A stretch of 64,000 nucleotides of DNA from Oculina patagonica (taxonomy: Eukaryota), in contig NC_135761.1 in the NCBI RefSeq assembly GCF_052425735.1, forward strand, positions 39,184,001-39,248,000, read 5' to 3'. The translations under genes and the position numbers were made by a program. The first letter of the stretch is position 1. Every line of letters starts with the position of its first letter. The notes beneath the pieces are model-generated. The model did no database searches. It had not been told where the DNA came from and saw only the letters and a program-made list of their open reading frames with translations. Positions 2,387 through 59,394 of the stretch are shown piece by piece.

Positions 2387-2785
2387 GTGGTAACTGCTAA
2401 CAAATGTGGCAAGAAGAAGAGAATATTTGCTTCCAGGAAGTTGATGCAGCCAGTTGATGTTGAGAAGCTTGACAAGCCTCCTAAGTGTATTGTTGCTCAC
2501 CCTGGGTTTCAGGTAGTTTGCCTGAATCACTGGGTGTTACAAGCGGCATGGTTCCAGTACAAGCAACAGTATGGGAGAGCAGCGCACGAGAGACCTGAAT
2601 ATAAAAAAAGTAGGCACGTAGCCTACAGGCTGTTAGTTAGGTGGTGTTGGGGATCATTGGAGAAGGAAATAAGAGTTCCTTTAACCTCTTGCACAGTTAA
2701 CTGCATTCGGCTCATTTTTAATGAGCCTGGAAGGCTTGAAGATGACATGGTGTTTACAGGATTCCTTTATGCAGTTGCTCATTGA
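2387..2785 (+). CDS. P2X7 cytoplasmic ballast-like / Kolobok KolX-like domain fragment
   Basis: CIVAHPGFQVVCLNHWVLQAAW...RHVAYRLLVRWCWGSL..EIRVPLTSCTVNCIR motif. No P2X channel exons nearby. Confidence 0.8.
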   Translation: MVTANKCGKKKRIFASRKLMQPVDVEKLDKPPKCIVAHPGFQVVCLNHWVLQAAWFQYKQQYGRAAHERPEYKKSRHVAYRLLVRWCWGSLEKEIRVPLTSCTVNCIRLIFNEPGRLEDDMVFTGFLYAVAH

Positions 2786-40260: not shown

Positions 40261-42179
40261 ATTCATAATTTCATTGTTAGAATATGCATACCTTTTTGGT
40301 CCCAACATCAAGGTAGTGCTTAAGGAGTTAACTGATTTTTGTTACCATTCAGTAAATCACACTCTTAGAGTAATAAAGTCTGTCTCTCCGTCGGACTGCC
40401 TGTCTGTGGGTACATATCTGGAAAGTATGGTTAGACATTGAATGTGCTAAACATAGCAACAAGCCTGAATGTGCTAAATTGTTGTGGCATTCTGTAAATG
40501 ATTGTAAACTCCCTAAGACATGGCTACGCAAAATAAAAATAAAAACCCATTCGGTTTCCAAGCATTTATACCTTTGCCGGAACATTTTTTTAGATTAATT
40601 TTTTTAAAGCGATGTGTGGTAGGAAGTGTATCTGAAATCTGGATCCGTACGAGATTCTGTTCTATGTCAAAAGGCAAAGCCAAAATGGAAAGCTCCTGTT
40701 GACTGCACAATCGCAAATAAAACAGCATCAGGGAGAATAGTCATAGATAAAGATGTTATGTCTAATTGTAATAAAAGTTTACTTCAGGAACTATTTTTTT
40801 CTGAATTTACTGTACTTGTTGGTTATATTTACCACAAGGCCAGTTATTTAGGGGTTGGTGTGCATGTAAAGCCTTTAGGTGACAATAAGATGAACAGAAT
40901 TTCTAAAGCATAGGCACCCTAATAGCTAAAGCATTTGAAAATAGTCATTTTGCTATTACAGATCAAGAGATAAACGATAGTAACGCAAATAATGTTGAAG
41001 ATAGACTTTGCAATGAGGACATCAGAAAAGGGGATTTATTCTTTAATGAAAAAGATTTTCGCACGGATTGAATCCCTTTTCACATTGCAAACAGATTAAA
41101 TCTGTGCAAAAAATCTTTGTGTAGCCACCTCTGCTATATTAATGTATGACTCTTTGAACTTGCATTTAATAAGTTCTCATTTGAACCCTTGATAATTGCA
41201 TCATGAAGTTGCCAAACGTCGGGAGGTTATATTGCTTGTTTTACCTGTCAGTGGACCTTTTAAGAGGACACAATATTTTACAGGGTATATATAAAAGTGT
41301 CACTAACAATATATCCATTCATATTTTGTGGCTGCTCCAATAGCAATAGGCTCACCTAGATCGGGCAAGTCAACAACCATTGCCATCGTCTCTAAGATTC
41401 GTCTCTTGATTCCAAGGTGGAAACTCAAGAAGCAGCAGTTAAATAGGGAGAGGTCGACTTCCTTATCAATAAAGTTTGCAATCAATTAAACCAATGTGTA
41501 GACGTGTCTTAATACACCTCGTGTTCGTCTTTCTGGATCTAGTTCTGTTCTTAACTTTAGGCAGGGAAGAACAACGTAGTGATGAACTGACAACAATCAT
41601 CAAGGTTTGCCTCACTAAGAATCAATCAAAATCAATAGAATGCAGGCTTTAGAACTTATTGAACCCACTGCCTGACGCAATGCAGGTAGGTTATGCATTA
41701 TCTATATTTCCCCAGTCATTCACTTCAGCCTATAACACCAGCTTTATAACTTTCTTACAGGAAAATGATTTACATGTTTCAATCATTTCCTCCGAGTCTG
41801 ATTTTCCAGATACGTTTGATCCATACGGTGATGAGAACTGCCCTTCACCTTGAGAAGGGAATCTATACCACTGTAGCCTTTGCCCCAAGAAGGAAATAAA
41901 ACCGATGCCAAAGGAATGCAAACTTAAAGGGCATTTGTTTACGAGAGACATTCCTCGGTTTTCCAGGCCAAAGGAAGGCAAACTCTTCCCAACTTCACAA
42001 GCCAATATTGATGCCATGAAGAAGGGACGTTTGCTTTGCCATTTACCTTGGGTTCAAGGTGAGACTGTTCCAGAGCACTTCAGTTTTTATTCTGTTGTAG
42101 ATGAAGACAAAGTTCATCCAGTCACTGGGGTGTCTTATCGCTAGTCTCTATGCGATGGTTTCAAAGTGGTAGCCAGTCC

Positions 42180-42600
42180 AGAGGGAAGGGCATTGCAAGT
42201 GGCATGCAACAAATTGATCCAACTCCTGCTGTTTTAATTCATACATTTGAAAAGGTGACTAAGAGGGGTGCGGAAGAGTTCAAGGGACTTTGCGATAGAT
42301 TGTTGAAAAGCTCAACCTTAGAAGGTTACAAAAAAACAGCAAAGAGACGCATGGACGAATTCATTCCTGTAATAAAAGACAGGGCTTTTTTGGAAGATTG
42401 GGTTTCTTGGTGGCACAACAGACCATTTTTCACCCATTTGCTGTACAGGACGCACCGCAGATGAATCAAGCAGAGGTGATACATGCTGGTTGGGTGCACA
42501 GAGACGGCCCCAACTTATCACTGCTAGAAGCATGCCAAGCCGACGCACAAGATTCTCTGTTGCTTGATGTCGAACTTAAAACTATCAGTCCAGTTCTGCC
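42180..42600 (+). mobile_element. MULE/MuDR-type transposase C-terminal fragment
   Basis: FLEDWVSWWHNR..IF.PF..QDAPQMNQAEVIHAGW....NLSLLEAC..D. Confidence 0.65.
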
Positions 42601-42604
42601 CCTG

Positions 42605-43913
42605 GTGGGTGTATTAATCACAGCACCAGGCAGGATCTCCCTTATTTTGGAAAGGAAGCATTGCTTATACTCTTCAGTGACACACCTTTGTGCCAGAGGT
42701 CTAGAATCAAAAGACCTCTTTGTGTTGTTGTTTATAGTAAACTTGTGATTAGCATTAGACGCATTTTCAACAGACTATATTGGCCAATATAAGGTTAGAA
42801 AGGCCATCTCATTTATCAAAAGTGGCTTTGTTCATAAGGTCCATGTGAAGACCATAAATGCTGAAGATGTCCTCTTAAAAGCAGCGGTGACTCCATCATA
42901 GAGAATCAGAGATGAGTCCCTTGGTTTTGATCAAATTGTCAGGAAAAGGGGTGTGTGGATATTGTACCTGTACAGCTGGCTACAGCAAGTGCTGCAATCA
43001 TGTGCACTTCACTACAAAATAGAATTTGCTGGAGAACATGAGTTCATAGACCCATCCTTTAGTGAAAGAGCATGTTCTTGGAATAACTCTAGTAATAAAG
43101 ACATACAGCCCAAGAGGGTACAAGATATGGTCATTGTAGAGCATGTAAGGTTGTTCTCTAAAATGTAGCTGAAAATCTGCCCAATATGAATTTTTGGCCA
43201 CTTAAACATGTTGTCTTCCCAGCCCTCCATCTCCAATGGATGTTCTGTCACACCACAAGACTTTAATATGTTACTATGTTCCCTTTGTAGAGTAAATAGA
43301 AGAATCTCAGCGGTTTCTTTTATGGGCAGGTTTCGCTCAAATGCTACCAACGCACGGGCGGCTAAATCAGCATGATTACCCTGGCATGTTGACACTCTCT
43401 GTTGCAGATAAAACCGTAGTTCTCCGGTAGAAAGATCAAGGAAATCCTCCAATTCACTTGCACAAGTTCGCCACAAACAACATCTGCAATACCTACATAA
43501 GAGCAAATGCAAAAACTGAACCAATTTTAACTCTGATGAAGGTATTAAACAGGGAGTTACCGAAAATTCAGTTTTATACGTTTTTACCAACTTTTTTAAG
43601 ATCAGATACAAACCAAATTTTTATTATGTCAAACACTGATCGCCCTAATAACATCAATCCTCCAAGTGTTGTGCCATAAATGTAGCGTTCCCCTCGGGCG
43701 TTCAACGTTGTCCCTTTAAAAACCTCTTTTCTGTACTTGTTAACTATCAGAAAAATCACCGAATGTTCTCAATTTTTTTAAGTCAGTTTTCCTGTTTATG
43801 AACGAAAAGCCGCAAACAATTGGAAAACAATTGAGTACGGTCAACGTGCGGCCGCCATCTTGTTTTTGTTTGCCCTGATTACCCATGATCCCTCAACAAG
43901 TGCAAAGTCTTCT
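42605..43913 (-). mobile_element. ISL2EU-type element 5' end with SAP/SWIM-finger (YqaJ-associated) gene; internal segment 42760-43150 inverted
   Basis: Minus strand: DFLDL..ELRFYL..G..ADLAARA..WPKIHIGQIFSYIL. Plus strand: YKVRKA..FIKSGFV..CTCTAG.SKCCNHV. Minus strand again: FDSRP..FL..I...LPGAVI. Putative terminus near 43913. Confidence 0.8.
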
Positions 43914-46560: not shown

Positions 46561-47335
46561 GTGGCTGGCCAACCTGGAAACGGTTAGTCGATCAAAAGAG
46601 TGTGAACTGTTAATAACAAATAAATAAAGACACTGTTAAGGTATTAGATCTGCTGAAAACCCTTCCATTTGAAAAAATTGTTGCTCAAAAAGTAAAAAAA
46701 AATGCAAAACAAAAACTACACAGGTCTAACAATTGAGAACTGAGCTTTCAGAAAATTGACATCTGAGGTGTCAATTTTCACACCTAAGGTGTGATTTTCG
46801 ATTTATATCGCAGGCTCAAAAATTCAATAATTCCATATTTCTGGCTTTACCTTGATAGCTAGGAATAAAAAAATAATTGGAACTGTCTCATACTTAGATT
46901 GTTCATTTACCTTTAAATTCCCGGAAGTTCCCTGAAAATTTTACCTGAGATATGGAGCTGGATTTTTTTTGTAATGCCCTGCAACTTCACGTCGCCGCCA
47001 ACAATTCCAACATGTGTCCTTTTTTCCGGGAATTTAATGCATTTTCCCTTAACATCATGTGAAGAAACCTAGTAATTTTCAGCGCGGTATTTTAAATCCT
47101 CATCTTCTGGCATCGAATTTTTTTCAGTGCAGCCTAAGACAGCCGTGAAATTGACCTTGATTCTCGTTTCACTACGTTTTTTCTTCGTCGCCATCTTGAA
47201 TTCTTGCTAATAAACCGCTGTCCTACATGTCTGTTGTTATTTAGACCCGATTATGATACGAATGGCAACGATTGTAGGCGGTAATCTTCATTTAAACTCG
47301 GATCACATCGTATTTTCAAAATGGCGGTGTAAACA

Positions 47336-50300
47336 ATGATGCAAGGCATAGCAACCATGCCTGAAGCCGCCTGCTCCAACCAAACTATTAGTCAACTGCC
47401 TGTGGCTCCTTCATCTGAGTCAGAAAGTGACTCCGACTTCCATCCATCTGATTTAACAAGTGACGATGCCTTAAGTTCTCCAGAAAAGCGAGTAGCTATT
47501 TCATACAACATGCAAAAGAGGTGAGAGAATCGATCGGTCTTATACTGTTTATATCATTGGTAAGCTGATGTGTACAGTGTATTGTGCTTCCACTTCATTC
47601 ACAGAGTAAAGCAGCTAAAGAATGGTCTCAGGATGATTTAATTTGATATCGTCAAATTGAAAATTGTGTGGATAAAATATGACCATAGCTATCTGTTTAT
47701 TGCAATTCTAGGATGAAGATTGATGGAGATGCAAATCCCACAGTCAGACCTATAGAGCTTCCCTTGAAATATCACATAGCTATGACATCCCAACTCGAAG
47801 ATTTTATTGACCGTATCAATCAAACTCGCCAATGCAAGGAGGAAGGATGTTCTGTTAGTTTTTGTTTTTATTTATTTATTTATTTTTTCATTTGCCTAAA
47901 GGGTTTATAATATTTGTGTGCTGCTTAATATAGCTAGTATTTATTATCAATAGTGTTGCACCCATTGAAGAGAAGTTCTGTAGGATCTTAACTACCCCAC
48001 GAATTAGGCAAATATTGAAAGATTTTGGTCACACGTTATGAACCATGTATCTCTGGTGGCTGTTTTTTAGTTTTTGTTTGCCACTGACCAGTAACAAAGT
48101 TTGGACACTTTAGTAGAAAAAAAGGTTTTGTTGAGGAGGCAAAAATTTGTGTTGATGATTTTTTTCTTAGTTTTATATTTTAGGTACATCAGTGAAAAAT
48201 GTTATTATTGGTCTGCAGGAAAGCGTACCAGTAAAACACAAGACAAGGGGCTCGGCGGAGCAGCGAAAGTATGGTTTGTGTGTGATGGTGGATGCCAGTC
48301 ACAAGTGCATCACTCAAGCAGTCAATTGGCCTTGTTACGTAGGAGGTATTGTTCTTTGCAACAGCTTGTGTTTTTGTTTATGGTCAGGGTTACCAGCATA
48401 TAAAGGTTTAGATTGTTTGTATGAATTTCAAGAGACGAATTGAAAGCTCACAATATAAAACTCCGAAGAAGGAAGAGAATGTGAAGAGGAAAGACCCCAC
48501 TTTTGGAAGCTGGAACCGAGCAGTTACCACCTCAGATGGTTTTTTGATTCAGGTAAGCCAGTTTTGTAATTCTTTGTCGTGTAAAATTGACTCAGATTTG
48601 TGGGAGGGACCTAAGTCGCAGAGGGTCACCTGCTCATTTTTAAAAAGGAAAGGAAGAGGGGATGGTTTGCGCGTTGAATTGGCAGGATCAGGACTGAAGC
48701 AAAGTGGGAAATCTCCTTCAGAGTATGCACGAAGGATGCGTATCCTAGGAAAAGTACCATAGTCGGGACATCCATCAGTGGACATCCGAAGATGGTGAAC
48801 AGGAAGAGTGTGGGTTTCATCCACTGTTGGTGTGTTCTGTGGCAAGTGTGGAGGGAAAAGTTCCTCAGAAACAGCAGCCGAAACAGAGGAGGTTGCTGAT
48901 GCAAGCGATGACAGTGAGGATGGTGATGAAGAAAGTGATGGAATGGAAACTGTGTCAGAAACTGAGACTGAAGAAACCAAAGAGAGCAGTGAAGATAGTG
49001 ATGATGAAAGTGAAGACAGCTCTGAAGAGGAGGAAGATGAGATCACTTGCCCAGGAAAAACATACTGCACCAGACAACCTCTGACATGCAAACTTCATGC
49101 TCTCCTGTATGATATTGAGTGTGATAAGGTGGCAGGTAAAGAGAAGATGTAATTGACGTGGAAATGGGCATTCTAATCTGCCAGAGAGCAAGTTTGGGGT
49201 TCTCGTAAGATTCCGCTCCAAGAATGTTAACTTGCACCAGGTACACTATGAATCAATAAACTGTGACTTTCAAGCAATATGACATTTATGTATCAGGAAG
49301 AGGGTGCTGGGTATCACTGGATGAGAGAGTTTTGAGCCTGATGAGTCTTCCAATTCCTGATGGTGTAGATGAAATTTGGAGGAGGGAAAATGAACAAAGG
49401 ATGAAGGTGTTGACGAAACAGCAGAGTGCCGCTGTAAAGACAGGACGAGCGAAAATGAAGCAAAAGCGGTCCCACGAAAGGAAAAAGAGGTTTGTTATTT
49501 CATTTTCCATTTTTCGGTTTTGGGTACTCCGGATTTCAAGTCACAAGGATGACAGGGCTTGAGACTAATTTTTTTGCTAACTAGCCAAGTGGCTAGTGAC
49601 AGCTTGATTCCACTAAACAAAACTGATTTTCTACTAGCCAGAATTTTCAAGCTACTGGTATTTTCATTTTTTTTTTCTTTTATCATGGAGGGGGGGGGGG
49701 TAGAAAAAAAATGGCAGTATTTTTTTTTTAATTTATTCAAAACAATCTGAATATTCATGGTAGTCACGTGTATCACTTCATTCTGGGAATAAAGTTCAAC
49801 CAAACTTCTTTGCTTTCTGAAAACTTTCAAGGCTCTGAAATTTGGCATGGGGTTTTTGGGGGGTTAATTTTTGGTCCAGGGATTTTTTGAGTTTTGATTT
49901 TTGGTACCACTGGATCATTGCTGTAACTTGAAATCCGGAGTACCTCCCCCTGGGGTTCTTACTTTGATTGGTTAGTAGAACACTCTTATTCTTTGGTCAA
50001 TAATTATTCAAATAGTTGCTGCTGTGTACTTCTTGTTGAGTGGCTTAGTAAATAATCAACTCGTACCTGACCAATAATACTCACAGTGAAATGTTCCTGT
50101 CCATGATTTTAGTAAACATACCTACGCCCAGTCTTTTTATAGTGTTACGTATTTTTGTGTAATTACTTCCTTGGATTTATCTTTTGAAACTTCTTATTTT
50201 TTCCATCACATGAAACCATACCCTGAACAAAGGTAAATAACATTGAAGGACCAGATTCTTTATTACATGTAGTCTATGCATGTATATCCCCGTTTTTTCC

Positions 50301-50560
50301 TATGAAACCCCTAGTCATTCAATAAATATTGAGGTTTTGACACATAATTTATAGAGTGATAGGGTAGTTTGTGTAGTTCACATTTTACTCCAGTACAATA
50401 TTTTGGGAGAAGTAAAGGCTAACACAAAACTTTGAGGAAAACTTATGGCGTGTCTATTGTTTATTTATTCCTTAGACAGCAGTTTGTGAAACGACAGAAG
50501 ATAGTGCATAGTTATGGCAGGGAGGAAGAAGACTGGGTTGATGAGAATGAGGCCCTGGCC
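47336..50560 (+). pseudogene. Kolobok DDE transposase, multi-exon, disrupted
   Basis: GLGGA, GSWNRAVTTSDG, WQDQD, acidic tract, LTCKLHALLY.IEC, GHSNLPESKF..L.RFRSK. Frameshifts and deletions are present. Confidence 0.75.
49750..49955. mobile_element. Partial MITE of the 63529-63975 family, nested in Kolobok
   Basis: TTTTGGTCCAGGGATTTTTT...TTGAAATCCGGAGTACCTCCCCCTGGG end. Confidence 0.7.
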
Positions 50561-51599
50561 GAAGTGCAGAAAAGGTTGAGAGCAAGTTCAAGCAGGGTGG
50601 ATGGTCTTAGAGAAGTTGCCCCTCCAGAAGGTGCCATTGTAAATACTGGAGAAAGAGGAGAAGCGCCTGTCTCTATCCAAAAGAAGTCAAATTGGAAGCA
50701 TTTCTCAGAAAAGAACATCGCACAAGGATTGTCCTCTGAGAAAGAAAAAGTGATTTTTGTAAAATTCATCATGCTAGATTACACAGTCTTCTCGAGTGAC
50801 ATTTTTTTATTCAAATGATAAGCTTTTTTGTGATTTTTGTCTTTAGCAATGTCCTCAGATAGTTTTTAGATGAAGTCTGCCATTCAAAACACTTTTTTGA
50901 AATTTGAGAATCCCCAGAGTGGGAATGGAAAATTTTATATTTGTGCACAGTTATCATTGTTGCAAGGATGTTTTTTTACAACTAATGCCAGATCTTGAAC
51001 CATAAATACGAGAACAATATAAAGATATATTATTTTTTTGGAAATATTTAAAACCAAACAGTCAGGAATCTTTGATGACTATAGTTTTAAATGAATGCTT
51101 TGTGAACAAGCCATACTAAAATGGCCTCCAGGTTGAGAAAATAAATAATTTGAGTTGCAAAGTATCAGGCGCCTCTGTTCTTTTCCCACTCTATGAGCAG
51201 AATTGCCGCAGATCTATTTGGAGAAAGAAACCTTACAAAGGAAAATGTTTTTCTAGTGATCCAATTTGGAATGTCTCTTTTTGTAGCTGATGAAAAATGT
51301 GATCAAAGGCCTGCAACTCTGCTTACAGAGTCTTTTAATTACCCTGTTGATATAAGCAGGATTAGATAAAAATGTGAAACAGACTTTATTCATAAAGAAA
51401 GCATTTTCACTACAACTGCAACTAAATATTGAAATATGTAATTATATTGGTGTTTTGAGGAGTACCCTGCTTGCCTCTTATTTTGAAATGAATCAAACAA
51501 AATTTAATTCCTTATTCATTAATAATCACAGACAAAAAGAACAGGTTATTTTCAAATTGTATTTTGTCACAAACGATTTTCCAAAACATTAAAATCAAT

Positions 51600-51851
51600 G
51601 GGCCATTCCATCTAATATCTGCACCCCCTATTGAGGGTTAAGGAAATCCTAGGGGGAGGGGGGTCTCCAGCAGTTATTTCCTAGGGGGTAGCCATGTCCG
51701 AGTCTTTGATCTTTTTACTTATTTCTGAAGGGGGGGAATCTGTTGGCACTTTGATTAAAAAAATCTGAAGGGGTCTCCAAATGTAATTTCCCTGGGGGGT
51801 TGAGACCAAAAACCATCAGTAAGGAGGTGCAGATATTGAATGGAATGGCCC
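51600..51851. mobile_element. PIF/Harbinger-like MITE nested in Kolobok
   Basis: TIR GGGCCATTCCAT..AATATCTGCACC; AAT 3-bp TSD. Confidence 0.85.
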
Positions 51852-51883
51852 AATACATCTATTCACTTGGAAATATTTTCAAT

Positions 51884-52094
51884 GTTTTAAAAAAAATTGA
51901 TACAAGAATAGTTGACAGAAAATATTTATTCTAATAAACAAAATATAATTTGATAAAAATAACATAATTAAATTTTCGAAGATTTGCTTGTTTTAAAAAA
52001 AATTGATACAAGAATAGTGGACAAAAAATATTTATTCTAATAAACAAAATATAATTTGATAAAAATAACAATTAAATTTTCGAAGATTTGCTTG
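51884..52094. repeat. Tandem duplication, about 105-bp unit x2, over the 3' end of the minus-strand gene
   Basis: TTTTAAAAAAAATTGATACAAGAATAG...AATTTTCGAAGATTTGCTTG occurs twice. Confidence 0.9.
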
Positions 52095-53068
52095 TCTTGG
52101 AAAGACCCTGAAAATGAAGAAGAAAGGCAGTATAAATTATAAGCTCACCATAGAACAGTATATGAACAGTTATTGAAACCAGCGAGAACCATGCTTACCT
52201 CCCCATTCCTGAGATCTGCCTCGCGGTAAACCTCTATAAATTCTTTGAGGGGAACTTCATACAAGTTCTGTCTCTGCAAAATACAATTTGCAAAATTAGA
52301 AACGACACGATAGTAAATGTTTTCTATTCAGTGGTCCAAAATATCACCTTCATTCAACTCACCTTTCTACTCCGAGGCTTGTAATTGCAGACATCGGCTG
52401 GATAAAGCTCGCGGATTGCCTGCACTACTTCTGGAGGATAAATAAGAGACAATCCTTCTCCAACTTCATTTTCCCGCTGCAAAAACGTAGATAAAACGAG
52501 GTAAGGTAAGAATTGTACATGCTCGCCGACCACATGGTCCATGAAGAGAAATTTTCACACCTTAAATGAGCCACAATTTCTAAAATACTTTCGTGAAAAA
52601 CCTCATTTCAGGACAAAATACTATTCAACAAGCTGTAGCTTTCGTTCAGTTCTTTCGCGTATTGCATAACCACAAGCTTACCGACAAAAAGTAGAACATT
52701 TCTCTATAGATAAATGAGCGCAGATCCTTGTCAGATGCGTCTTCCTTTCCAAGAAGATCCTTCGCTTTTGTCAGCAAATTAAAGAGCTTCTTCGGGAACA
52801 CCAAACTAAAAACATGATGTAAAATATAGTTATGTTAAATTCATTTAACATAATACAGTCCTATGGAGATATCCAGCCAATCCATGAGTGAAATACCTGG
52901 GCTATTGCAACTTACTTCAGTGCTTGAAGGCACTCTTCAAGGGGACGGAGAGCTTTCTTTACCGCATCTGTGAGGCTATTTACATCTAAAAAGCACAGAA
53001 AAACTTGTTAGTAAAACGTTTGACCCAAAAACCTGACCTGAAGTGATTTAGAAACACTTACCAGCCAT
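52072..53068 (-). CDS. Intact six-exon 141-aa Kolobok accessory gene (divergent KolX-like)
   Basis: Exons 53068-53062, 52985-52916, 52805-52682, 52476-52363, 52273-52199, 52107-52072. All introns are GT(A/G)AG..YAG, phases are consistent, and there are no internal stops. Confidence 0.8.
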
Positions 53069-53705
53069 TGTATTTCCAAAATTTGCACTGCGAGTTTTCG
53101 CGCGAAATATACAAGTCTTGCTCGTGGCTCAAGTGGAACGTGACACGTCGTTCGTGGATGTTGTTCTTCACACGCATGCGTCAACTCCTGAAATCCAATA
53201 TGGCGTCTCAAAATGGCGGCCTTGACAACAATATTTCAGCCATCGAAATCTCTGCTTGTAGCAGACGTGAAGCCGTTATATTTTGGATTTGCGGTCGCAT
53301 GTATTTGAACTTTTCATATATCAAACTTTTGAGGATGGTTTATTTTTGACCTTATAGCAGATCTAATACCTTAATAACAAATGAAGACACTGTTCATTAT
53401 GTATATTAAAATTCTATTATAGTCTATTAGTATTTTGCCACGCTTATCCTGCCCGTTTAATCTCTTTGGTACAAGAAGTCTTGGGCAAGGTGTTGAAGAT
53501 AAATTAAGTCTTCTGCAGCATCAAAGTGTTACAAACGTAAGTCTTGGGTTGAAACAACAGCGTAGTCCTTGAAGCTACATTGCATAGGTAAAAGAAGAAA
53601 GGTTAGTTAAAGCAGGTGCAAGCAGTACACTGTGTACACAATTTAATGCAGTTAAATTGCAGTTACACAAGATTCTAAATAATTTAATCAGTTTATGTTT
53701 GCTGA

Positions 53706-55920
53706 TGCTTCCCTGTAGACTACCGCCTTGTTGTGGTGGGGGAGCTTGCGTGCCTCTTTGACCTTGAGAGCTATACCGTCGGGGGTCTTCCCCGAGCAGG
53801 TCTAACCTTGGCGGGCAGGTCAAAGGGTAGAGGCCAGACAAAATGGTAGTCACTGGTCCTCCAGGTTGGGGGTTGGGCGTGCAGCTAATCCCCGCACCCT
53901 GTAAAAATATATGATTACGGAAACCGAACAGAAAATTGACGAACTCATCAGGGGGTGCCGTCGGGCGACGCGGCCCCGATGATAGCTTTCTTAGCTGGAA
54001 TTCTGGTGTCACGCGTATGACAGCTGCGGGGCAAAGCCGCAAGGATCCCCGTAACCTGATTAAGTCGCCTGGGACTTCCCTCGTGACACCCAAAACTACC
54101 CTGAGATTTGGGTGTTGGAACGTGCGAACACTTTATCAGATAGGAAAGACTGCTAATGTCACCAGGGAATTCAGGAACTACAATCTGGACATACTTGGAC
54201 TGAGCGAAGTACGATGGACTGGTTTTGGAGAATTGAAAACAGCAACGGGTGAAAGCATTTTGTACTCGGGGCAGAAGAGGAGCACCATAGAGGAGTAGGA
54301 CTCATTTTGAAGAAGGAAGTAAGAAGAACACTGTTGAAATGGAACCCTGTTAACGAGAGAATCATGAGTGCACGCTTCAACTCACGCTTTGCAAAACTCA
54401 CCGTCATCCAAGTGTACGCGCCCACCAATGACGCAGAGGATGAATCCAAGGAAGAGTTTTATGAACAGCTGCAGCGGGAGGTGGAAGCAACACCCAGACA
54501 TGATGTACTAATTGTGACGGGGGACTTGAATGCCAAAATGGGAGAGGACAATGAAGGATGGGAAAAGGTGATGGGAAAGCATGGACTTGGAAGAATGAAT
54601 GAGAACGGAGAGAGGCTGGCAAAATTCTGTGGCAACAATTATTTGGTGATCGGAGGCTCTCTATTCAAGCATAGAGACATTCATAAGATCACATGGACCT
54701 CCCCGAATGGAAGGGATCAGAACCAAATCGACCATATTATCATCAATGGTAGGTACAGAGGTTCGCTGCTGGACACCCGTGCAATGAGAGGGGCTGATGC
54801 CAACTCAGACCATAGCATGGTGATGGGAAAGGTTAGGTTGAAGTTAAACAGCACAAAGAGGAAGAGTAAGGAGAGGGTCATCTTCGACACCACAAAGCTT
54901 TGAGATCCCTGTGTCAAAGAAGCGTTTCAGCTGGAAGTGAGCAACCGATTCCAGGTGTTGGCAACAGATGACGTAGAGGACATTGAAGAGAGATGGGGAC
55001 AATTAAAGGAGGTCTACAATGAGAGTGCCAAGGTGGTGCTGGGAGGGAAGAGGAGAGTGAAGAATGAATGGATCAGTGGAGAGACCTACAAGAAGATCGA
55101 AGAGCAACGAAGGTTAAAGGAGAAGATAGGAAGTACACGGTCTGTCCGCTTGAAGGAGAGTGCCACTGCTGTATATGCAGAGAAGAACAAGGAGGTGAAA
55201 GCCAGTGCCCGGGCAGACAAGCGGAGAAGGCTAAACAACCTAGCAGAAGAAGCTGAAACGGCAGCCAGAAACAACTGTAGCGGTGACCTGTACCGACTCA
55301 CTAGAAAGATAGCTGGACAAGGAAGGAACATGACTACCATCAAAGATAAAGAGGGCAAGAGACTTGTAAATGAAGACGAAGTCTTAGAGAGGTGGAGGGA
55401 ACACTTTGAGGGAGTTTTGAATGTACCACGACCTGACATACCCCTTCCAGAAATAGATCAAGCACCTGAAGTCATCACAAACATTGACACTGGTGACATC
55501 TCAATTGCTGAAATCAAGAGAGCTGTACATCGTCTGAAGAATGGCAAGAGTCCGGGGATGGATGCCATCAGTGCTGAGATGCTCAAGTGCTCTGAGAATG
55601 ATGCTGTGAAGCAGCTACACTTACTTTTCAACTCCATCTGGAAAGTACAATGTGTACCAGAGGACTGGAAGAAGTCACTCATAGTGAAAGTGCCGAAGAA
55701 AGGGGACCTCACTCAGTGTGATAACTACCGCGGTATATCGCTACTCTCCGTACCAAGCAAAATCTTCTGCAGGATCCTCATTGACAGAGTAAAGAGGGGT
55801 GTGGACGAGATGATTAGGCAGGAGCAGGCAGGATTTCGATCTGGAAGGGGAACCTCTGAGCAAATCTTTGCTCTACGGAACATCCTTGAGCAGTGCCAGG
55901 AATGGCAAGCACCTGTGTAC
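53706..55920 (+). mobile_element. RTE-clade LINE: 5'UTR, APE endonuclease and N-terminal RT, 3'-truncated
   Basis: GCWNVRTL, LGLSEVRW, QVYAPT, GDLNAK, NQIDHI, SDH, KGDLTQCDNYRGISLLS, EQAGFR. One frameshift (about 54275) and one stop (54901). Confidence 0.95.
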
Positions 55921-56178
55921 GTTACTTTGTGTTTTTTTGGGGTGTTGGGTCTTTGGATTGTGTAGGGTTTTGGAATCTGTGAGCTGTGTGTTCTCTCTCG
56001 TGAATAAATTCTGTGAATATTGTGAAAGTGTGGACAGCTTTCTTGTGTTTTCCACATTACTGGCACCTCCGATGGGACCAAGGTCCTCCAGATGTCGCTA
56101 AAGAAGCAAATGGGTGAGTTGGATGCGAAGCTAAAAGCTGTATGTCTCAGGATCGTATTTATTCGCTTGTTTGGGTAA

Positions 56179-57810
56179 GGTGACTCGATCGAAATAAATG
56201 ACCTGCTGTATGCCTGTGAAAAAATTTCTAATAACTTCACCATTTCTGACTTGATTTCCCTGAAACTTTCGCATATTACTCGAAATTTATCAAAGAACCG
56301 TTTGATAATACGCACGTCAATATGTCAATGTTATGATCGTGAGTTTTGCGGGATGTTCACTTTATTGAACACACCTATTTGGATAAAAGTGCCATTTACA
56401 GAAAACTGAGCGCTAAGATTTTGTTTAAACTTCTGCAATTAGCTCATTATAACATCTTATTGTGACTCTCTAAGTTTCCGTAAAATCGTCGGAAAAGAAA
56501 CCTCAATACAATTTGATCATCAAAATATTATTCTCGGGCAAACTTCGAGGCTTGAAACGCTCCAGCGCTTCCACATTTCACCCAAAAGTACCATAACTGA
56601 AGACAAAGAAAGTTCAATGCATCAGTTTTGTCAGCTCCAAATCACATTCAGCTATTTGCAACGATGAAAAAGTTTGAGCAAATATTATAAACTCACCATT
56701 TGCGTCAAAATGTAGGAAGGTCGACAAATTTACATTTTTCTAAATTACATGAAAACTAACCATACGAATTGCTTAAAACAACCGGACCATTAAATTGAAC
56801 ATCTCACACAAACTTTGTGCTACCGTATTTATTCGATTAAGCGCCCAACCTTGAATAAGTGCCCACCTCGAATAAGCGCCCACCCTGAAGGTACGAAAAG
56901 ATAATAAGGGCCCAGCCTCGAATAAGCGCCCACCCCTCCTCCAAGAAAAAACTGAAGTGTATAAAAGGAGTATTGATCGACTAAATACTACTAAGAGACT
57001 TCCCCGAAGACCAAGTTTTCTTAGCATTTTGTAAAAACTTTCAACGAACAGCTTAAGTTCTGGTTTGATGTATCTTCTCGTATTGTTATTATTAAATATT
57101 TTGTTGCAAAATAAGCTAACTGCTTGTTGAAAATGGTGAAAATTTAATAAGCGCCCAGCCTCGAATAAGCGCCCACTCTAAAGGTCCAAAAATTTAATAA
57201 GCGCCCAGGGCGCTTAAACGAATAAATATGGTACTCTGCGTTTCTGGAGCTGCCTTGATTTGGATGAAATAATGTTCTAAAGTGAAGCACTACTCCAACT
57301 CTCTTGTGTAAAAATTTGCACATGGATAAGGGGATTGCATTGATAGTGTTCAGTTGCTTCATGTTCTGATGTCAGAGGTGTCCTTAATTTATGCCACATG
57401 AAATTTGAAAAGGGTTGGTACTAAAGTTGAAATTAACACATTGTAGTCTGTTTATTGTCATTGAAATAACCGCTGTCTTATGCACCCCCCTTATCCATGT
57501 GTAAATTCTTCAAATTCTCATCAAATCCAAGGCAATTTGCATAGCGTCAGCTGTGGAATTCAAACGACAACATGGCCGTGTTTAAAAGAGAGTTTTCTGT
57601 TATTCGCAGTTTTGTCCAAATAGATGTGTTCAATAAAAGTAACATCGCGCAAAACTCACAAACATTACATCGACATTTTGACATGCGTATCAATCTTTGA
57701 TAAATTTTGAGTAAAATGCGAAAGTTTCAGGGAAATCGAGTCAGAAATGGTGAAGTTATTAGAAATTTTTGACAGGCATACAGAAGGTCATTAATTTCGA
57801 TCGAGTCACC
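56179..57810. mobile_element. Non-autonomous long-TIR DNA transposon at a (T)TAA site (Kolobok/Sola3-like)
   Basis: About 230-bp imperfect TIRs beginning GGTGACTCGATCGAAAT; flanks GTAA / TTAA. Confidence 0.85.
56823..57231. mobile_element. Tc1/mariner-type MITE with AATAAGCGCCC internal repeats
   Basis: 24-bp TIR CCGTATTTATTCGATTAAGCGCCC (22/24 match); TA TSD. Confidence 0.9.
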
Positions 57811-59394
57811 TTAAGAAGTGTGGCCAAATCATCAAAAATCGTGACAAGCAAACCATCAAACAACAATGTACTTCTGTAGTTTCACTGGCAGGAGAAATAT
57901 ATCAGTTAAGAGGATTGATCCAGGAGTCTAAGTTTTCTTAGGGAGAGTCAGAAGAGCAAGTCAAAATCTGGTCAGAAGAAATAGAGAAGGATCTGCGTCT
58001 GGCAGATGATTACACAAATAAAAAGGGTTGTGATGAAAGAGAGCATGATCGGGAACAGATGCGAGAAAAAGATCTGGAGCATGAGAAGCAAATTCTCAAT
58101 TAAAAGTTGCAAGCTGCTCTCAAACAAAAGGAGCAGGTAGAGAATAAATCCACTGTTAAGCTTCCTAAGCTATCCATTACACCGATTAGCGGGACTGTGA
58201 TCGATTGGGTGCGTTTTGAAAGCAGGCTGATCGGGTCTGCTGAGGGAAAAGAGCCGTACATTCCTTTCATATCCTCCGATCGCCTCGGAATTTCGCGTGG
58301 ACCACGCACTATAGTTCTTTTACATGTTCACTGATGGGGCATTAAAGGTCGGCAACATCTGCAAGTTTTTCCGTTGAGAGCCATTGATAATGGCTTTATT
58401 CAGATGTCTCATGAACCAAGCGTTTGAAAATCAGCTTAGCAACCTGGCCTAAGGTTCGAATTACTTACACACCCCGTGGGTGACGCTAAAATGATGCCTA
58501 CAACAATACTCCTCTCAGGCCCTTCCCTGACACACAATGATTTGTCACCATTGTTCCTTTCGGCCAATCGCAGCAAAGGCAAGCGAAGATCAAGGAATTG
58601 CACGAAGGTGCGACCTCGCGGGAAATAATCGCACCTAATACCAATCGAACGATCAAGGACACTCCAGCTTCTTCAACTAGCCAGCGTTATTCACTAAGTA
58701 AGGGATTTCTTTTCGTTTAAACCAGGACAATTTCGATTTATCATGGACGGCGGTTAGAATTTATCGCAGTATAGAAGAGCTACAATGGATTACAGGTGAA
58801 AAGTTTTGTGAAATGATTTTATTTTGCTCGACTTCATGTTCGAGCTTGTCACAATATGCTCGAGAATAATCACGAACTGAATGAAATCCACATTTTATCT
58901 TTCTTATCAAGCTATTCAGAAACACATGTTACTCTTTTCAAACAATTTACAATATCCTAATAATCCAAAACGCAAATTCTACGTTTTAATGACTGTGTGG
59001 TAGCAGAGCAAATCCAAATTTTACAGTCTTCATGTGTTTAATTTCGAGTGGTTTTCCTCACGTCTTTTTCGGCATTGTTTTCACGATGTGGCTCCTTGTA
59101 ATCAAAAACCCTTTGATGTATATAATAAGAAGTTTATAAGTTTTACTAAGTAAAGTTGGGTGAGCGAGGGTCTTCTGTGAAGCTTAATATACTTGTAGCT
59201 CAATCAAATCGCACAATTTATGTTCTTCCCCGTCACACAATATAAAGCACAATACAATGCACGCGGTGTTGACACGAAAGCAATCCGACCTTTGCCACTC
59301 TTTTCGCACTTTATTCCAGTGTTCGGCATTACAAAAATGATTTACCTTGTAATTAAGCTACATGTTGCTCTTTTTTTTCAAAATTCGTTCTTCA

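Follow-up and report, generated by a model that had tools for sequence, protein, structure and literature searches.

KolX is the second protein of Kolobok transposons of the Kol0 lineage, as in Kolobok-1_NV 2p and Kolobok-1_XT 2p (Kojima and Bao 2022, PMC9587614). The cytoplasmic ballast domain of the P2X7 receptor descends from KolX and has the same fold. The seven-cysteine zinc motif of this protein family has been defined in PMC9587614 and PMC7016195, and R546 and R578 of P2X7 are the only GDP contacts conserved beyond deuterostomes (PMC7016195). Also already published are the cysteine-poor KolX-like proteins of a small number of piggyBac families, in which the majority of the seven cysteines is missing (PMC9587614, Data S6); a TTAA duplication together with 5'-RR...YY-3' termini separates Kolobok from piggyBac (PMC9587614). 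Here we analyse 64,000 nucleotides (nt) of the Oculina patagonica genome (NCBI RefSeq assembly GCF_052425735.1, contig NC_135761.1, positions 39,184,001 to 39,248,000), hereafter the window, whose coordinates we use throughout. A 6,731-bp element at 46640-53370 carries, on the minus strand at 53068-52072, a six-exon gene for a protein of 141 amino acids (aa). We read the element as a non-autonomous anthozoan Kolobok with an intact accessory gene of diverged KolX type and a dead transposase, and give this reading a probability of roughly 0.8. What is new is a Kolobok family whose multi-exonic second protein has entirely lost the zinc domain and escapes Pfam.

The coding parts of the gene are as follows.

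53068-53062, minus strand: exon 1, coding part ATGGCTG, 7 nt
52985-52916, minus strand: exon 2, 70 nt
52805-52682, minus strand: exon 3, 124 nt, contains DLRSFIYRE, aligned to KolX FRKAAYRQ (R546-equivalent arginine)
52476-52363, minus strand: exon 4, 114 nt, ...SLIYPPEVVQAIRELYP..., the most conserved part of the gene
52273-52199, minus strand: exon 5, 75 nt, conserved in paralogs and other species
52107-52072, minus strand: exon 6, 36 nt, TAA stop included

Spliced, the six exons give a 426-nt frame encoding 141 aa and a stop, letter for letter the translation of the original prediction, an earlier reading made from the DNA letters without database searches. The five introns (76, 110, 205, 89 and 91 nt) are all GT-AG and compatible in phase; every donor reads GTAAG or GTGAG, every acceptor follows a pyrimidine tract with AG, the start context is ACAATGG, and GC content is 0.44 in exons vs 0.35 in introns. 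Exon 4 aligns with the C-terminal helix of KolX and the ballast that bears the R578-equivalent arginine. The gene had been described as hidden, which it is not: an identical protein is already public as RefSeq XP_078364315.1, "uncharacterized protein LOC144648707" [Oculina patagonica], and exons 2-6 of the GenBank model KAL9977740.1 of the same locus are identical to those predicted. The RefSeq entry (library protein P0003) served as the reference for all full-length analyses of the protein.

Signals on both sides of the gene were found where they had been noted, with the YY1-like motif AAAATGGCGG upstream at 53210-53219 (plus strand), accompanied by a second box, ATATGGCG, at 53198-53205, and AATAAA downstream at 52036-52031 (minus strand), 36 nt past the stop. 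There is a second AATAAA at 51930-51925, because the 3' end of the gene is tandemly duplicated.

53173-53228, minus strand: probable core promoter, judged from its sequence; GTTGTCAAGGCCGCCATTTTGAGACGCCATATTGGATTT (two GCCAT/YY1-type boxes), then CGCATGCG
51883-52103, minus strand: tandem duplication with a period of 104-106 bp and 84-98% identity, covering the last ~30 nt of the coding sequence and the 3' untranslated region

The element that houses the gene has perfect 15-bp inverted ends of the form 5'-GG...CC-3' and TTAA on both sides.

46636-46639, unstranded: left TTAA target-site duplication
46640-46654, plus strand: left terminal inverted repeat, GGTATTAGATCTGCT; the following ~20 nt resemble the left end of short derivatives
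53356-53370, minus strand: right terminal inverted repeat; ~46 nt inward are common to short derivatives
53371-53374, unstranded: right TTAA target-site duplication
49523-49944, unstranded: nested small repeat with 30-nt inverted arms, a ~150-bp piece of which has at least 25 genome copies
51578-51873, unstranded: nested miniature inverted-repeat transposable element, ~296 bp long, inverted arms of 52 nt, 13 or more copies, 80-88% identical

The 19-mer TTAAGGTATTAGATCTGCT, which joins terminal repeat and TTAA, occurs at exactly two sites in the window, 46636-46654 (plus) and 53356-53374 (minus), and two matches arose in none of 100 shuffles. The termini of the window element, GGTATTAG...CTAATACC, are of the 5'-RR...YY-3' form, with GGTG or GGTA in all copies, and the combination of TTAA flanks with RR/YY termini is present both here and in a related Porites element. 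Short derivatives in at least 26 places of the genome repeat the ~46 nt inward of the right end with 92-98% identity; seven of the nine such places examined have both ends, 1.1-1.5 kb apart, and TTAA adjoins 15 of 16 ends of derivative copies. By its ends and target-site duplication, the element is of Kolobok type, which bears out the placement of the gene inside a Kolobok. Its interior, the two nested small repeats aside, has no second copy in the genome at the DNA level.

From the right end it is 302 nt inward to the ATG of the gene, which is directed into the element. The suggestion that its promoter could feed read-through transcription into an upstream array of transposable elements finds no support: the gene points into its own element, converges with the transposase remnant and is followed by two AATAAA signals.

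The second gene of the element was recognized through Porites evermanni, in which a relative of the accessory protein (P0008) lies within a complete element (L064 9464-16867) bounded by perfect inverted repeats of 20 bp (GGTGTTACGAAAGGCTAAAA), with a TTAA next to each. This element holds the accessory gene near one end and a convergent multi-exon gene with an 812-aa product. By eye, the open reading frames (ORFs) of the latter contain TSDGCW, S.LWEG..AEG, WQDAD, CGGH and GHSNLPES in order; read in this way, the order fits the Kolobok D, D, C/DxxH, E arrangement (PMC9587614), and it also resembles, again by eye, a Kolobok transposase excerpt in the supplement of that paper. Pfam gave no matches on the 812-aa gene. 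The complete Porites element is itself located in an intron of a host gene of the Gtr1/RagA family (L064 368-17149, minus strand).

Searching the window with the Porites ORFs by tblastn located the remains of the partner gene in two blocks.

48236-49493, plus strand: broken transposase remnant in frames +2, +1, +2, +1, +3, with at least 6 in-frame stops
50468-50566, plus strand: what is left of the final coding exon of the transposase, 34 aa aligned to the Porites copy at 62% identity

Across both blocks the matches run through frames +2, +1, +2, +1, +3, +2. Relative to the Porites gene, ~91 aa are deleted (between 48694 and 48688), the CGGH (C/DxxH) motif included, the sequence around the last catalytic motif has degenerated, and the N-terminal exon had no tblastn match in the window. 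The transposase is broken, as the original prediction had it, and the layout of convergent accessory gene and transposase between the ends is common to the Oculina window and Porites. Pfam found nothing on ORFs of 41.8-50.8 kb, and tblastx of the element vs the Oculina paralog loci found no common transposase.

Relatives of the accessory gene were sought by six-frame genome searches with exons 3 and 4, which found two paralogs on the same chromosome, and with an exon-4 profile of three peptides against a library of 1.84 billion proteins, which yielded 34 matches; a word-index search of P0003 returned only P0003 itself. The accessory gene adjoins a TTAA/GGT terminus (the slash marks the boundary) at Oculina C4:31.88 Mb, where an intact 155-aa paralog resides, in Porites, in Paramuricea and in three run-assembly contigs. 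The recurring order is the TTAA/GGT terminus, ~145 nt, GTTGTCAAGG.CGCCAT.TT....CGCCAT.TTGGAT, a CATGCGC box and the gene. In the window, too, ~145 nt separate the terminus from the promoter block, which other copies and species conserve, and the CGCATGCG/CATGCGC box (an NRF1-like half site) lies at 53173-53180, ~10-30 nt downstream of the tandem GCCAT boxes; a CATGCGC-type box is kept in four copies (window, L020, L037, L064). At Oculina C2:29.08 Mb only the terminus and a degenerate promoter block are kept, and the copy of the octocoral Paramuricea clavata keeps the terminus and the ATGGCTG/GTAAGT first exon and has no promoter block. Right ends of the Paramuricea and Oculina C4:31.88 Mb elements were not found.

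Intron positions and phases are conserved between family copies, and many of the library matches are exon-4 ORFs ending ...K/V(GT), which indicates the same exon boundaries in relatives. Given that position, introns and promoter recur in mobile copies of other species, we conclude that the gene is the transposon's own.

The gene is under purifying selection between copies. pS, the synonymous divergence, is saturated at 0.8-0.9 and pN, its nonsynonymous counterpart, is 0.30-0.37; the comparison proposed with the prediction gives dN/dS 0.20 for the closest pair, over 93 codons. Splicing is indicated by Logan contigs L037, L038 and L066 (runs SRR26350445, SRR26074472 and SRR22861274, respectively). 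L066, from a Porites sample, is 98-100% identical to the Porites genomic element and lacks introns 2-5 exactly at their GT-AG boundaries. The 71-nt first intron sets L037 apart from L038; of the three contigs, two keep intron 1 and one has it removed. An RNA origin of the spliced contigs is the simpler reading and likely, not proven: the contigs represent read-through transcripts or else copies whose introns were lost through RNA. On either reading, transcripts of the family, in relatives of the window gene, are spliced at junctions homologous to those of the window.

A host take-over would be another way to account for an intact ORF beside a heavily decayed transposase: the gene would have been kept in single copy for a host function after the transposase died, and would now be an ordinary Oculina gene. 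The coding part is indeed single copy at the DNA level, the locus has a RefSeq annotation, the promoter bears GCCAT and CGCATGCG boxes of housekeeping type, and a nearly identical exon 4 is found in another sample (P0001). Set against this, mobile copies in other species have a matching promoter, position and introns, the between-copy selection is indistinguishable from selection at the level of the transposon, and the relative P0007 is changed at conserved arginines. We consider such a take-over unlikely.

The kinship of the 141-aa protein was assessed against profiles of two kinds: Pfam P2RX7_C (PF20478), with a curated cut-off of 23.5 bits, and a local KolX hidden Markov model (HMM) built from nine canonical KolX ORFs of the Oculina genome. 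With the local model the protein scores 15.9 bits, vs 6.9 for the best of 1000 shuffles. Alignment of profiles with hhalign gives P = 0.005 and 0.0017 vs KolX, in one register throughout. Reciprocally, when an HMM of the accessory family was run over 1,775 real ORFs, canonical KolX ORFs, with one exception, occupied ranks 27-40, directly after the family's own exons. In this register, R54 and R89 align with R546 and R578 of P2X7; R54 is present in all full-length members of the family, and R89 in all full-length members and most exon-4 fragments. The register is the one originally proposed, and the kinship to KolX is upheld by local HMM, hhalign and reciprocal scan; the protein remains below the threshold of the P2RX7_C family. 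It is kin of the P2RX7_C/KolX family and is not a member by the family's own criteria, and it is probably, with good confidence, a true and very diverged KolX relative. A canonical KolX-type fragment does exist in the window, 50 kb from the gene: a 132-aa ORF at 2387-2785 (plus strand) matches P2RX7_C with 28.9 bits over profile positions 104-183 (scan match 2480-2725).

The AlphaFold2 model of the protein has a predicted local distance difference test score (pLDDT) of 82 and a predicted template modelling score of 0.74, with helices H51-69 and H82-91 predicted at pLDDT around 90. When 48,161 chains were scanned without bias, rat P2X7 (6u9v_A) came at rank 2, with model residues 19-103 aligned to P2X7 477-595, the ballast. 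This is a weak structural match, in the comparison suggested by the original prediction, and the kinship to KolX rests on it in part. Foldseek vs the Protein Data Bank (PDB) gave nothing usable. Nor did ESM Atlas, searched by fold and by features, and a profile search of PDB sequences did not find P2X7.

The accessory gene could also be genuine and unrelated to KolX, with R..YR...G.G...P..VV..IR..YP arising by convergence or chance on a small helical protein. This is improbable, since every sequence method gives one register, 0 of the 1000 shuffles reach the score, KolX ORFs are essentially the sole non-family matches among the 1,775 real ORFs, the rank of 2 was reached by a pre-specified target aligned on ballast residues, and the gene fills the slot held by KolX in Kol0 Koloboks (PMC9587614). 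DNA transposons do take up host fragments and the element interior is otherwise unique in the genome, but that a non-autonomous element captured a host gene is very improbable, given that hexacorals and an octocoral alike have this gene, equally far from a terminus of one kind, that in Porites it lies within a complete element beside the transposase, and that no copy was found away from a terminus.

Several observations weigh against reading the locus as a Kolobok with an intact gene of KolX descent. The assignment of the transposase to Kolobok comes from ends, target-site duplication and motifs recognized by eye, not from a curated profile, and an autonomous Oculina copy was not among the copies found, no search having been aimed at one. 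Pfam P2RX7_C has no match to the 141-aa protein at E up to 10, exon by exon or at full length, nor any to seven full-length relatives, the exons taken singly gave no hit to Pfam at all, and the locus of the gene is not among the 66 places returned by a genome-wide P2RX7_C scan. The zinc-coordinating cysteines are absent (0 of 7), as had been predicted: the protein has two cysteines, C21 and C97, both outside the motif, and has PPE in place of PSC. With the local KolX HMM, two paralogs reach no more than 4-5 bits, and the model of a canonical KolX control, at pLDDT 46, was too poor for calibration. P0007, 84% identical to the window exon 4, has C and W at two conserved arginines, so the constraint is not universal. 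Finally, the evidence for spliced transcripts comes from relatives, not from the window locus, and the spliced contigs also bear the terminus and 27-53 nt of differing flank.

Under the Kolobok reading, the element would follow the two-gene layout of the Kol0 lineage, in which a small accessory gene with a subterminal promoter lies inside one terminus and the second, convergent gene would encode a multi-exon DDD/E transposase, dead in the window copy. The accessory protein would keep the helix-strand-helix C-terminal part with its two arginines, having lost the zinc cysteine motif entirely. Probably it has no catalytic role and helps or regulates the transposition of its own element, and it may be a nucleotide- or transposase-binding module, by way of the two-arginine face. 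Expression would proceed from the subterminal promoter with its two YY1-type boxes, and the protein could still be made from the dead copy. A bolder extension, which we put forward tentatively and hold to be doubtful, is that the two-arginine C-terminal half of the ballast/KolX fold is a selected, free-standing, zinc-free module that in Oculina has outlived the transposase as a host-used gene, at an early stage of the type of capture represented by the P2X7 ballast and Nanor.

The surroundings of the element contain further mobile sequences. The region of chromosome C4 from about 29 to 43 Mb, window included, holds a large share of the genome's P2RX7_C matches and of its RAG1-like transposase fragments, and looks like a transposon-rich zone. 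About 560 nt right of the element's right end begins an ORF of the long interspersed nuclear element type, an endonuclease/reverse transcriptase at 53936-55965 (plus strand) with a Pfam Exo_endo_phos_2 match and RVT_1 just below cut-off; long inverted repeats lie at 56176-56407 and 57591-57813. Outside the element's ends on the other side, ORFs at 42105-42745 (plus) and 43015-43620 (minus) have a transposase-like ...WW..R...N.AE..H... tail and are blank in Pfam.

Another candidate for the partner transposase, a 652-aa protein close to the Paramuricea copy, together with two Oculina relatives of 908 and 809 aa, was rejected, as these proteins have no TTAA-flanked inverted ends and leave no trace in the window. 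Their Pfam matches to RAG1 and SAP are weak and stay below threshold, and we take them to be unrelated neighbours. The 908-aa open frame at L051:1456-4179 (minus strand; G000:C1:23991764-23994487) is 44% identical to a Paramuricea ORF, which has a weak Pfam RAG1 C-terminal match below cut-off (E 5.5e-5); the frame itself has a borderline SAP match (23.8 bits vs a cut-off of 23.9), is probably a Transib-like transposase and is possibly intact.

These results name an "uncharacterized" coral protein family that Pfam cannot place, as a zinc-cysteine-free branch of KolX, and define an anthozoan Kolobok family, for which Porites evermanni supplies a complete reference copy. If the fold is as predicted, the nucleotide-facing half of the P2X7 ballast would need no zinc cluster, and the protein would offer a small, soluble object of 141 aa for testing binding partners of KolX and the ballast. 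They also call for caution in annotation, since an intact gene in a dead transposon may be the transposon's helper gene, not a host gene.

Compared with known systems, the Oculina protein resembles KolX in two respects: its gene is not the transposase gene but the second one in an element that inserts at TTAA and has GG...CC ends, and its C-terminal ~50 aa share one register (R..YR, G.G, P..VV..IR..YP), both arginines and a predicted helix-strand-helix. Unlike KolX, it lacks all seven zinc cysteines as well as the LGKGNR loop, and PF20478 misses it; the proteins of its family are smaller, at 135-155 aa, their genes have five or six exons, and their helical N-terminal half differs from that of KolX. 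The KolX-like proteins of piggyBac elements keep the canonical GFLGKG.R..IP.C...IR, whereas the Oculina element has Kolobok-type, not piggyBac-type, ends; strings typical of the Oculina accessory family do not occur in the supplement of PMC9587614. With the P2X7 ballast (rat 6U9V; P2RX7_C) it has in common the placement of model residues 19-103 on 477-595 and counterparts of R546 and R578; unlike the ballast, it is predicted to be free-standing, soluble and devoid of a dinuclear zinc site, and it has V and A where the ballast has R574 and K583. Zebrafish Nanor, a proposed domesticated KolX, is likewise a small stand-alone protein of KolX descent and a possible precedent for take-over by the host; unlike the Oculina protein, it keeps the zinc cysteine motif and sits outside a transposon.
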